Assembly (NCBI GenBank): GCA_021613535.1
Contig: CP075492.1
Span: forward strand, 10,478,001 to 10,542,000
Direction of reading: 5' to 3'
DNA: 64,000 nucleotides
Origin: Adineta vaga
Taxonomy: Eukaryota > Animalia > Rotifera
The translations under genes were made by a program, and so were the position numbers. The notes below the pieces were generated by a model, which had not been told where the DNA came from, did not search any database, and saw only the letters and a program-made list of their open reading frames with translations. How positions within the stretch are numbered: the first letter of the stretch is position 1; each line of letters opens with the position of its first letter. Shown piece by piece: positions 10,545 to 13,754 of this stretch.

Positions 10545-11824
10545 ATGTCTCTGACAACAACTAATATGTTAAATCTTGTCGAAAAAGATGTTGATAAAGC
10601 TATTGAATCTGTTCAAGAATATTATGATAACATCGAAACAAATCTCGATCAAGTCATCGAACAAATTCAAACAACACTTTCTCATCCAATCGATGATCAA
10701 CATCTGATTCAAACATCTCTTCAAAATACAATTAAACCATTAGCAAAACAATACAGTGATAAACATAAAGATCTTCATGGTTCCATATCAAAAATTGGTA
10801 AAACAATTGATAAATGTTTTCAATCAGATTTTGGTAATGTTCCAATAACAGAATTATTTGATACACCGGAAAAATATAAATTAATTTATATGATTATATG
10901 TGAAGATCTGTATCGTCAAGGACGAATGACTATTGCCGATAAATTAATTGAAGAATCGAAATTAAATGATAATGATTTATTTAATTTAGAGAAAAATTTT
11001 CTTGAAGAAATCAATATGATTCTCGAAAATTTACGTGAAAAGAATCTCATGCCAGCAATTGAATGGTGTTTACGTCATCGAACTCAATTGAATCAAACAG
11101 GTAGTCTCTTAGAATTTCATTTACATAAAATGCGTTTTGTACAATTATTACAAATGGGTACATTTCAAGAAGCAAAAACTTATCTTACAAATTTACGACA
11201 ATATTCGATTAGTAATGGACAATGTGAACAAGATGTTAATCAATTAATGGGTGCATTAGTTTTTGCACAACGAGATTTAGCAAAATCACCTTATAAATAT
11301 TTACTTGAACCACATTTATGGTTACAATTATCAGAATTATTTATGCAACAAGCATTTCAACAAGTAGGATTAGCACAAGATAGTCCATTGTATGTTGTTA
11401 TGAAAATTGGTTTTCAAGCTTTACCAGCATTAATGAGGTAAGAATCAAAGATTTGATTTAGGAAAAGTACTCATGTCATTCTATCGATTCGTTAGTATTG
11501 TAAATGCTATGCAAAATACTCAAGTATGTCATATTTTATCGAAAGATGAATTACCAATTGAAATTGATGTTGGTCAAGAACATCGATATCATAGTGTTTT
11601 TGCTTGTCCAATTCTTCGACAACAAACAACAGATCAAAATCCACCGATGAAACTTGTTTGTGGTCATGTTATATCAAAAGATGCATTGAATAAATTATCG
11701 ATTCAAAATAAATTAAAATGTCCTTATTGTCCACTAGGTGAGAATTACAAATTTTCAATGTGTTACAATAGTTTTTTCCTTTTTAGAACAAAGTCCGTCG
11801 GATGCTCGGCAATTGTTTTTTTGA
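10545..11824 (+). CDS. RMND5: RMND5/GID2 CTLH-complex RING subunit (3 exons)
   Basis: [13 protein letters not shown], LisH/CTLH/CRA region, [14 protein letters not shown]...[17 protein letters not shown]...KCPYCP. Confidence 0.93.
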
Positions 11825-11989
11825 ACCTTATTAATCCGGTTTTTCTCACTTCTTTTATTGTATTATAATGTATTTTGTTTTCTTGTGCCAATAATGAAGA
11901 TCAGTGAATACTCTTTCTTTGTTTTTAATTATGTAAATTTTCTTTTCATGATCTTCTAGATAGAGAAAGAAGGTATCTCATATTTTGAA

Positions 11990-13406
11990 ATGTATAGAAA
12001 ATATTTTGATCCATTGGATTATAATCTATCGGCTGATTTTCGTTTAACGAAACTGTCCGATCTTAAAGGTTGAGGGTGTAAAGTTCCTCGAGATGTGCTC
12101 CACCGGCTGCTCGAGGGACTTCAAACAGCCGATAAAAACGGCTATGGTGATGGACAGCATCACCAAGGACTCATGCCTGAGTCCAAACCAACACCGGTGG
12201 TCGGTATGTAATTGTTCAATAATTCATTAAAGAGAACATCGAATGTTTTCGAGTTTGTTCTTCTCTAGGAATTGGTCTTGATTCATGTGTAATACCAATA
12301 CGTCATGGCGGACTTTTTCTGGTACAATCAACTGCTTTCTTCTATCCACTAGTCGATGATCCATATGTTATGGGAAAAATCGCTTGTGCAAATGTTTTAA
12401 GTGATGTTTACGCTATGGGAGCTGTGGAAGTAGATAATATGTTAATGTTATTAAGTACAAGCAATAAAATGACAGAAAAAGAACGAGATACTATTATGCC
12501 ATTGATTCTGCAAGGATTCAAAGTAAGAGAACGAATGATTCGATTTGTTTGAAATTGAATGTTGTTTTGATTTATTTATTTATTTAGGATTGTGCTGAAG
12601 AAGCTGGTACAACTGTTCAAGGTGGTCAGACAGTCATTAATCCATGGTTAATTGTCGGTGGTGTAGCTACTTCTGTATGTACACAAAATGAAATAATCAT
12701 TCCAGAAAATGCAATTGTTGGTGATGTATTAGTTTTAACTAAACCATTGGGCACACAGGTTTCATTTTTTATTAACATTTCATTTGAATAATTCTATAAC
12801 AATTGATAAATTCTAGGTAGCTGTCAATGCTCATCAATGGTTAGAAAATCCTGATCGATGGAATCGTATTAAATCTATGATAAGTGAAGATGATGTTCGA
12901 AAAGCCTATCAACGTGCGATGAATTCAATGGCTAGATTAAATAAAATTGGTATATATATTCTTCAAACATATATATATATATTCGATTTGGTTTATTTTT
13001 TTTGCTAGGTGCATCTCTTATGCATAAATATAATGCACACGCTTGTACAGATGTAACTGGCTTTGGTTTATTAGGACATGCTCAAAATTTAGCAAAGCAT
13101 CAAAAACATGACGTCTCATTTGTTATACATAATTTACCAATTATTGCTAAAATGGCAACAATAAGTAAAGCTTGTGGTAATGCATTTGGTTTATTACAAG
13201 GTACAAGTGCTGAAACATCCGGAGGTTTACTTGTTGTTTTACCACGTGAACAAGCAGCAGCTTATTGTAAAGATATTCAAGCACAAGAAGGTTATCAAGC
13301 ATGGATCATCGGTGTAGTTGAGAAAGGTGGTCGAACGGCAAAAATTATTGATAAACCAAGAATTATTGAAGTACCTGCCAAAGATACGGAAGGTGAATTA
13401 TGGTAG
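11990..13406 (+). CDS. SEPHS2: Selenophosphate synthetase, selenoprotein form; in-frame TGA (Sec) at 12071-12073; exons 11990-12203, 12269-12522, 12588-12758, 12817-12949, 13009-13406
   Basis: [17 protein letters not shown]; GIGLDSC; [17 protein letters not shown]; GGQT; [11 protein letters not shown]; ETSGGLL; SECIS in the 3' UTR. Confidence 0.93.
12081..12184 (+). promoter_or_regulatory. Structured UGA-recoding element (SRE-like hairpin plus three further hairpins) in coding exon 1
   Basis: Stems 12081-92/12110-21, 12127-31/12139-43, 12145-52/12158-65, 12167-73/12178-84; first stem begins 7 nt after the TGA. Confidence 0.75.
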
Positions 13407-13460
13407 ATGCGAATCAAAGAAAAAAGGCATTTTGTTGTGAATTATTCAATTTATTGTTTG

Positions 13461-13554
13461 TCTTTATACTAAAATGGATTTGAATGATGTATTAATAACG
13501 AATATAATAGAATATATTCTGTTATAGTTATTAATCTGATTGTTCCAGTAAAGA
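13461..13554 (+). promoter_or_regulatory. Eukaryotic SECIS element (form 2)
   Basis: ATGAT 13484-88 / TGAT 13537-40 core; helix II G(T)ATTAATAAC/GTTATTAATC; unpaired AA 13501-02; apical helix TATAATAGAA/TTCTGTTATA; helix I includes TGGA/TCCA. Confidence 0.88.
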
Positions 13555-13754
13555 TTAACTTAAATTGATCAATTTTTCTTTGTTTGTACTGTAATTTTGT
13601 GAAAATAAAGTCTTTACGAAAGAATTCACATTCTCATCAAGATAAATCTAATCGTACACGTACATACAAAACTTATTTCAATAAATATAACATAAGCTTT
13701 ATTCATGAATAAAATATATTATAAAATGAAGAAAATGTTGTGTTTTCTTCTCTC

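Follow-up and report, generated by a model that had tools for sequence, protein, structure and literature searches.

A lineage-specific array of hairpins extending the Sec-redefinition element of a selenophosphate synthetase gene in the bdelloid rotifer Adineta vaga

Described recoding structures and the bdelloid locus

Stable stems located 2-10 nt after the UGA have been described in all UGA-containing selenophosphate synthetase (SPS) genes (PMC4561486), and the selenocysteine (Sec)-redefinition element, or SRE (Howard et al. 2005, and reporter work on SEPN1, both as cited in PMC4561486), provides the nearest described counterpart of the structure considered here. The present analysis concerns a 133-nt tract that begins at the in-frame UGA of an SPS gene in a 64,000-nt stretch of Adineta vaga contig CP075492.1 (the window, a term used below also for the SPS copy that it carries), and that folds into four consecutive hairpins, hp1 to hp4. 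In common with the SRE of metazoan SPS2, this locus has a stable coding-region hairpin a few nucleotides after the Sec UGA, synonymous-site conservation, and a selenocysteine insertion sequence (SECIS)-like element in the 3' untranslated region (3'UTR) of the same mRNA. Published SREs, however, are single stem-loops or extended single stems, whereas here three more hairpins follow within a near-invariant 133-nt tract, and two of them are confined to one lineage. The post-UGA tract is a real RNA structure under selection and a lineage-specific extension of a known element: hp1 is the already known SRE, and the array is a new lineage-specific variant of it.

Other multi-stem elements offer partial parallels. 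The hymenopteran readthrough element (HRE) of insect SPS1-UGA genes (PMC4561486, Supplement S6) is likewise built of several stems around the UGA, an upstream stem included, and the window has a GGG-UGU hexanucleotide; but HRE genes are without a SECIS, belong to species without selenoproteins and carry an ultraconserved hexanucleotide, whereas the bdelloid genes conserve a SECIS-like element but vary in the hexanucleotide. Moreover, the extra stems of the window lie in tandem downstream, and no clover with the UGA at its apex is formed. The vertebrate SELENOP mRNA resembles the present one in that several conserved coding-region structures (the initiation stem-loop, ISL, and SRE1-3; PMC5727441) occur in one selenoprotein mRNA; these have roles in translation and UGA redefinition as tested by synonymous disruption, and SRE1 stimulates Sec insertion (PMC5727441). 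SELENOP is nevertheless a different gene in which the structures are spread near different UGAs, whereas here all are clustered after a single one. A large structured region starting about 8 nt after a leaky UGA is also shared with viral readthrough stem-loops: the extended 3' stem-loops of the alphavirus/coltivirus type (Firth et al. 2011) reportedly stimulate UGA readthrough as single long irregular stems acting independently of a SECIS.

Structure of, and selection on, the post-UGA tract

The open reading frame (ORF) lies on the + strand and runs from ATG 11990 through the in-frame TGA at codon 28 into GGG TGT AAA GTT CCT; in translation the UGA stands in U-G-C-K-V-P, the catalytic motif of selenophosphate synthetase, as expected of a eukaryotic SPS2, and the last exon matched both the AIRS_C domain and proteins named selenide, water dikinase. 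The assignment made from sequence, that of a UGA-containing SPS gene, was upheld, and a SECIS-like element is present in its 3'UTR. The relevant features of exon 1 are as follows.

11990..12070, + strand: start codon and the 27 codons preceding the UGA (translation; covered without mismatch by the mRNA contig of run X1)
12025..12035, + strand: 5' strand of a long-range helix that pairs with 12126-12136 and excludes hp2
12038..12052, + strand: upstream hairpin hp0, UUUCGU / ACGAAA with a 3-nt loop; stem 12038-12043 / 12047-12052, ending 19 nt before the UGA
12071..12073, + strand: in-frame UGA, Sec codon 28 (sequence and translation), kept in all orthologs examined
12074..12079, + strand: GGG UGU (Gly-Cys), which fits the readthrough hexanucleotide GGG-UG[C/U]
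12081..12121, + strand: hp1, the SRE hairpin; stem 12081-12092 / 12110-12121 with a 17-nt apical part (RNAfold)
12127..12143, + strand: hp2, AGCCG / CGGCU with a 7-nt loop; stem 12127-12131 / 12139-12143 (RNAfold)
12145..12165, + strand: hp3, UGGUGAUG / CAUCACCA with a 5-nt loop; stem 12145-12152 / 12158-12165, probability 0.97 in every context
12167..12184, + strand: hp4, GGACUCA / UGAGUCC with a 4-nt loop; stem 12167-12173 / 12178-12184, probability 0.96
12185..12203, + strand: invariant A/C-rich stretch closing exon 1 at the 5' splice site (0 variable sites in five window-type sequences)

Folding of 12071-12203 with RNAfold returned exactly the four stems that the sequence-only reading had listed after the UGA, and the GC-rich character attributed to the tract was equally evident (GC 0.54, as against about 0.30 in the surrounding gene). 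The minimum free energy of these 133 nt was -57.5 kcal/mol (z = -5.2), with none of 200 dinucleotide shuffles as stable, and the part downstream of hp1 gave z = -4.8 when folded alone (0/300 shuffles). A second null model, in which the peptide was kept and synonymous codons were redrawn 3000 times from the gene's own usage, yielded -28.6 +/- 3.8 for the whole tract against the observed -57.5 (0/3000), and -17.7 +/- 3.1 for the post-hp1 part against the observed -31.6 (1/3000). Taken with a third-position GC of 0.45 in the tract and 0.16 elsewhere in the gene, these values indicate that codons have been chosen in favour of structure. The folded molecule is the sense RNA, since on the opposite strand its G-U pairs would turn into C-A mismatches. 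In folds of the complete exon 1, hp1, hp3 and hp4 retained pair probabilities of at least 0.96. A 5-bp closing helix (12075-12079 / 12191-12195), predicted when the tract was folded alone, was rejected, its probability being 0.01 in the whole-exon fold and the change of GGG to GGA in relatives breaking the pairing.

Related sequences were collected by searching with the last exon and taking the DNA around the matches, and additionally by scanning metagenome contigs for the 22 bases starting at the UGA; the genome searched was a 100.8-Mb assembly in six contigs. The resulting sample consisted of 20 distinct bdelloid sequences that span the UGA region, inclusive of the genome's own second SPS copy, the ohnolog L002 on contig 6 (75% identical). 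The relatives derived from moss and other plant-associated metagenomes, and the upstream CTLH/RING neighbour gene is common to them. Loci L013 and L018 proved to be GC-rich false matches of the pattern scan without an SPS reading frame, and were discarded. Exon segments were concatenated for the tree and distances, and the tree, constructed on exons 2-5, contained a clade (support 90/86) composed of the window, L017, L012 and L010, itself nested in a group with L002, L004, L011 and L021 (support 98/99); L029, which has the same 133-nt exon part and the same N-terminus as the window type, is the deepest member of the clade.

Comparisons within this window-type clade, conducted with five genomic sequences and the transcripts of three further organisms, confirmed that the tract has been held at the nucleotide level. 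Between the window and L017, the rest of the coding sequence differed at 91/947 positions (third positions 27%), the part from the UGA through hp1 at 1/52 and the post-hp1 part at 0/81. The equivalent figures for L029, whose divergence from the window is about that between the window and the second copy, were 138/947 (third positions 37%), 4/52 and 2/81, both of the latter falling in loops. Across the five sequences, exon 2 was variable at 44/252 sites, as compared with 3/81 in the post-hp1 part (Fisher p = 0.0015) and 0/40 in the stems of hp2-4 (p = 0.0014); at third positions the stems gave 0/14 and exon 2 gave 38/84 (p = 0.0007). The constraint starts at the UGA, because the 81 nt preceding it vary about as much as exon 2 (10/81).

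The variable sites of the tract were 12076 (the Gly wobble position), 12091 (an A-U to G-U change in hp1), 12097 and 12109 (both in the apical part of hp1), 12133 (hp2 loop), 12157 (hp3 loop) and 12177 (hp4 loop); among the differences listed for the transcripts of the three further organisms, 12174 (hp4 loop) was added and 12157 recurred. The hp3 stem was thus invariant in the five sequences, and the loop change 12157 G>A was the sole one listed for it in those transcripts, while the only changes recorded in hp4 (12174 T>C and 12177 C>T) were both in the loop and both amino-acid-altering. Two of the loop substitutions are non-synonymous (Met to Thr and Pro to Leu), and hence it is not the peptide that is conserved. 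In the sister clade, which has neither hp3 nor hp4 (L005, L009, L016, L022 and L024) and served as a control, the rate of change in the homologous part was 1.4-4.5 times that of the rest of the gene (15/90 as against 25/555 in one comparison), making it the stretch of the gene that evolves fastest. The synonymous-site constraint proposed earlier as a check on the array was accordingly found: the three extra hairpins are under nucleotide-level purifying selection within their clade.

The individual layers of the array have very different distributions. The first hairpin, hp1, is a stem of 12 bp with one U-G pair and a pair probability of 0.98, separated from the UGA by a 7-nt spacer that lies within the 2-10 nt of an SRE; its identification as the SRE was sustained by agreement with the published element (PMC4561486) in both position and form. 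It was present in 20/20 distinct bdelloid sequences, most of which were retrieved by a pattern that fixes the 5' arm, with 97.9% of cells paired; the independently found loci L002-L005, L029, L030 and L033 agreed on hp1, and L029 and L030 differ in the 5' arm with the pairs kept. All variation in the stem was pair-preserving (G-C to G-U, U-G to U-A or C-G, A-U to G-U), and no two-sided pair change was found among the 20 distinct sequences. In one bdelloid-like metagenome sequence (L003:1742-2000) the UGA and hp1 are kept, and a long in-frame Thr-rich low-complexity stretch then replaces the usual short linker. The small upstream hairpin hp0 had 97.5% of cells paired across the 20 sequences, its variation comprising U-A to U-G changes and one two-sided change; its codons CGU and ACG are taken to be unusual in such an AT-rich gene.

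The second hairpin, hp2, had 80% of cells paired, with two-sided changes at 3/5 pairs and a covariation score exceeding those of all 500 shuffles. Its 5' arm also shows near-perfect complementarity over 10-11 nt to codons 13-15, and the long-range helix thereby predicted would enclose both the UGA and hp1. This helix predominates in the whole-exon folds of the window, L017 and L012 (0.91-0.98); in L010 and L029 it is weakened by single substitutions and does not prevail. In Adineta-like sequences 8-11 of its 11 pairs can form, L015 having 11/11 with a U-A to A-U swap, and across all sequences 71% of cells were paired. The comparative data slightly favour hp2 over the long-range helix, and a switch between the two is possible.

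The standing of the array had been made to depend on its conservation in rotifer SPS orthologs, and here the outcome was divided: hp1 occurs in all of them and hp2 is widespread with covariation, but hp3 and hp4 are not general to rotifers. In the other sequences, the second copy included, the post-hp1 part folds like its shuffles (z = +0.4 to -1.5), and a 4-bp ACUC/GAGU precursor of hp4 can be seen by eye in some relatives, such as L021.

Candidate roles of the array

On balance, the array is probably a layered cis-acting RNA module in the coding sequence of an expressed SPS2-type mRNA, the added hairpins of which serve to reinforce or insulate the SRE for UGA recoding. The oldest layer of such a module would consist of hp1 and the small conserved upstream hairpin: with the UGA in the A site, hp1 would stand at the mRNA entrance of the ribosome, slow it, and favour SECIS-directed Sec-tRNA decoding over termination, in the manner of the SREs studied with reporters (SELENOP SRE1, PMC5727441; SEPN1, as cited in PMC4561486). 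The widespread hp2 would then represent a second layer, and hp3 and hp4 would have been gained in the lineage of the window copy and its orthologs and thereafter held by strong RNA-level selection. Together, hp2-4 would most likely reinforce or insulate the SRE by keeping the tract locally folded and preventing the mispairing of hp1 or hp2, for example in the long-range helix, and the further structure that the ribosome has to unwind may render recoding of this very early UGA more efficient. The roles considered for the array (better recoding, two products, protection from nonsense-mediated decay, NMD) are ones that we infer only.

A number of observations weigh against this assignment. Both hp3 and hp4 are restricted to the window-type clade, being missing from the ohnolog L002 and from every other bdelloid clade sampled, so that neither is needed for SPS expression as such. 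No compensatory change was found in either, the stems never varying in the five sequences, and the argument for them consequently rests on substitution rate and on the placement of a few changes. They begin 74 and 96 nt past the first base of the UGA (span 74-114), far outside the reach of the decoding ribosome, and any effect of theirs on recoding must therefore be indirect. In the whole-exon fold of the window, hp2 itself has a probability of 0.07 and the long-range helix (12027-12035 / 12126-12134) one of 0.91. Finally, no variable site was counted in the linkers and the final 19 nt of the exon (0/25), an invariance equal to that of the stems; this suggests something beyond plain hairpins, be it a compact or tertiary fold, the binding of a factor or selection that disfavours alternative pairings.

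A serious rival is a selected RNA structure with a role other than recoding, such as mRNA stability or escape from NMD, splicing of intron 1, translation pacing or a platform for a regulatory protein, a reading that is possible though rather unlikely. The conservation data speak for it no less; hp3 and hp4 lie too far off to touch the decoding ribosome, and the invariance of the linkers extends to the 19 nt before the splice donor of intron 1, which is located 19 nt after hp4. The UGA from which NMD would have to be escaped is early and has four exon junctions downstream, and the window-type clade is without a shared 3'UTR block, suggesting that its post-transcriptional control has been rewired as a whole. 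Set against a role of this kind are the start of the constrained tract at the UGA, with the preceding stretch varying at the level of exon 2, and the continuity of the tract with the SRE; furthermore, no known motif was found with Rfam in the window gene and five orthologous loci, and the free variation of the loops argues against their sequence-specific recognition. An absence of function, whether the fold arose by chance or exon 1 was recently homogenised among lineages by gene conversion or transfer, is very unlikely, even though the clade is represented by only five genomic sequences and three transcriptomes. The fold has a z of about -5 under two null models, the few changes all avoid the stems, and, with introns unalignable and the 5' flank about 75% identical, conversion could account for the pattern only if its tract coincided exactly with the post-UGA exon part in several lineages. 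Less probable still, to the point of being nearly negligible, is conservation owing to an overlapping ORF at 12093-12230, the ATG of which lies in the hp1 loop: although that frame has 45 codons, 5/6 of the substitutions falling within it are non-synonymous in that frame (12097, 12109, 12133, 12157 and 12174; codons read by hand), all of them sparing the stems, and several bdelloid orthologs lack the ATG and have GAC GTG. The post-hp1 part is unique in the genome, and a repeat or mobile element was dismissed accordingly; no tRNA-like structure was detected by ARAGORN in 11800-12400.

The sequence-only reading had further proposed that an extended element could let one gene make both a Sec-containing (SPS2) and a non-Sec readthrough (SPS1-like) protein, as has been suggested for metazoan SPS2 genes without an SPS1 paralog. 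The hexanucleotide GGG-UG[C/U] has been tied to readthrough and linked to SPS2 genes in species without SPS1 (Mariotti et al. 2015, PMC4561486; Supplement S6), in a data set outside which the rotifers lie. A separate SPS1, for which a check had been suggested, is absent from this genome, which has two SPS loci only, both with the UGA, and the window does have GGG-UGU; in addition, hp0 and hp1 flank the UGA and the possible long-range helix encloses it, an arrangement loosely like the three-stem hymenopteran element (PMC4561486, Supplement S6). The stem that would hold the UGA itself was, however, weak and not conserved, the column pairing with it being variable, and was not retained.

The hexanucleotide is not conserved among the bdelloid sequences. 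The Gly codon is GGG in the window, L021, L025, L020 and L003, GGA in L017, L012, L010/L014, L029, L005, L006/L007, L009 and L024, GGU in L002, L030, L011, L004, L016, L022, L015 and L008, and GGC in L033. Its third base may therefore be G, A, U or C among orthologs, as at a free synonymous site; it is A in 4/4 of the other genomic window-type sequences, and is the most variable site of an otherwise invariant stretch. This behaviour weakens the argument for two products. Moreover, the SECIS-like element is conserved with covariation, so that Sec insertion is probably the outcome that selection has favoured at the UGA, and, both SPS copies being expressed, a division of labour needs no dual-product gene. 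A dual-product gene is accordingly improbable. The result is also relevant to the proposal that GGG-UGY is a mark of dual-function SPS2 genes, as the hexanucleotide is not conserved in the bdelloids, which lack SPS1.

It is unlikely that the two SPS copies divide the work between them with the array as part of that division, and that the alternation of hp2 and the long-range helix acts as a conformational switch. Under such a division, the window copy would contribute the reinforced module (SRE plus hp2-4) together with a canonical AUGA/UGA SECIS core and the loss of the 3'UTR block, and the other copy a plain SRE with a variant SECIS core (UUGA...GGA). The switch, for its part, may make the state of the recoding element depend on passage of the ribosome over the 27 codons that precede the UGA.

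The contribution to recoding of structures beside a Sec UGA is known from few reporter studies (SEPN1, SELENOP), and, because SPS2 produces the selenium donor required for the selenocysteine that it contains itself, a feedback loop is set by how efficiently its UGA is decoded. The locus constitutes a natural experiment, in that one genome has two expressed SPS copies with the same SRE, to one of which an 81-nt three-hairpin extension has been added and kept nearly constant against a divergence of up to 37% at third codon positions elsewhere in the gene; if the copies divide the work, they would provide a new, naturally paired system for the role of structure downstream of a Sec UGA.

The SPS transcript, its SECIS-like element and its introns

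The remaining features of the gene are the following.

11958..11959, + strand: trans-splicing acceptor AG for the spliced leader; body of the mRNA from 11960 (X1 contig, genomic AG)
12269-12522, 12588-12758, 12817-12949 and 13009-13406, + strand: SPS exons 2-5, read from the sequence; stop codon TAG at 13404
13476..13546, + strand: type-II SECIS-like element, AUGA at 13484-13487 and UGA at 13537-13539; conserved across orthologs
13604..13617, + strand: AATAAA signal and 3' terminus of the X1 transcript contig (at 13617)

The SECIS-like element is built of AUGA, a helix II of 9-10 bp, an unpaired AA after helix II, an apical helix and UGA. Helix II covaries, being AUUAAUAAC / GUUAUUAAU in the window, AUUGAUAAC / GUUAUCGAU in L004 and AUUGCUAAC / GUUAGCGAU in L033; L029 has another variant with two base changes per arm, read by eye from the 3'UTR. 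The Rfam SECIS models gave no match at E up to 1 in the window gene or up to 5 in five orthologous loci, and the element was therefore judged by alignment and folding. In the second copy (L002:1290-1370, - strand, 3'UTR, G000:C6), UUGA replaces AUGA and GGA replaces UGA in the SECIS-like core, and in L030 the core combines AUGA with GGA. A conserved block in the first ~70 nt after the stop codon (…CTGGCGTG…, then …ATTTATCAT…) was recorded in L002, L004, L005, L009, L011 and L030, and is missing from the window-type sequences (window 13407-13470, L017 and L029).

Evidence of expression was obtained from contigs assembled from public runs and aligned to 11800-13700, which show presence and splicing, not levels. 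A 1422-nt contig from run X1 extended from 11958 to 13617, skipped all four introns and contained a single mismatch, in the 3'UTR; the UGA exon and the SECIS-like element are thus carried by one spliced mRNA. A second contig in the same run corresponded to the mRNA of the other SPS copy, confirming that both are expressed. Exon 1 closes at 12203 and is followed by GTATGT. The joints 12202/12268 and 12948/13008 were of the GT..AG type in 4/4 runs, as was 12756/12815 in X1; the joint 12523/12593, located within a skipped repeat, was deduced solely from contig pieces.

In the X1 contig, the non-genomic letters CTTACCAAG precede 11958, where the genome has AG, and CTTACCAAGAG was found at the 5' end of a contig from another organism (X17). 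The SPS mRNA is read as trans-spliced to this leader, which we take to be the bdelloid spliced leader, the distance from the leader junction to the UGA being ~111 nt. A literature search with the spliced-leader letters returned unrelated primer matches only, and support for the leader was drawn instead from genomic copy number: CTTACCAAGAGGT, in which the end of the leader is followed by GT, has 54 genomic copies, as compared with 2 for a control pattern. These copies occur mostly as head-to-head pairs ~168 nt apart and in clusters (for example C1:1639465-1639645 and C5:9884354-9925971), and are probably spliced-leader RNA genes.

Differences in intron content were also apparent. The window copy is without an intron at 12372/12373, where L010, L012, L017, L029 and the second copy L002 have one of 45-61 nt; since its closest relatives and L002 carry the intron there, the window copy has probably lost it. 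Intron 1 is missing in L011.

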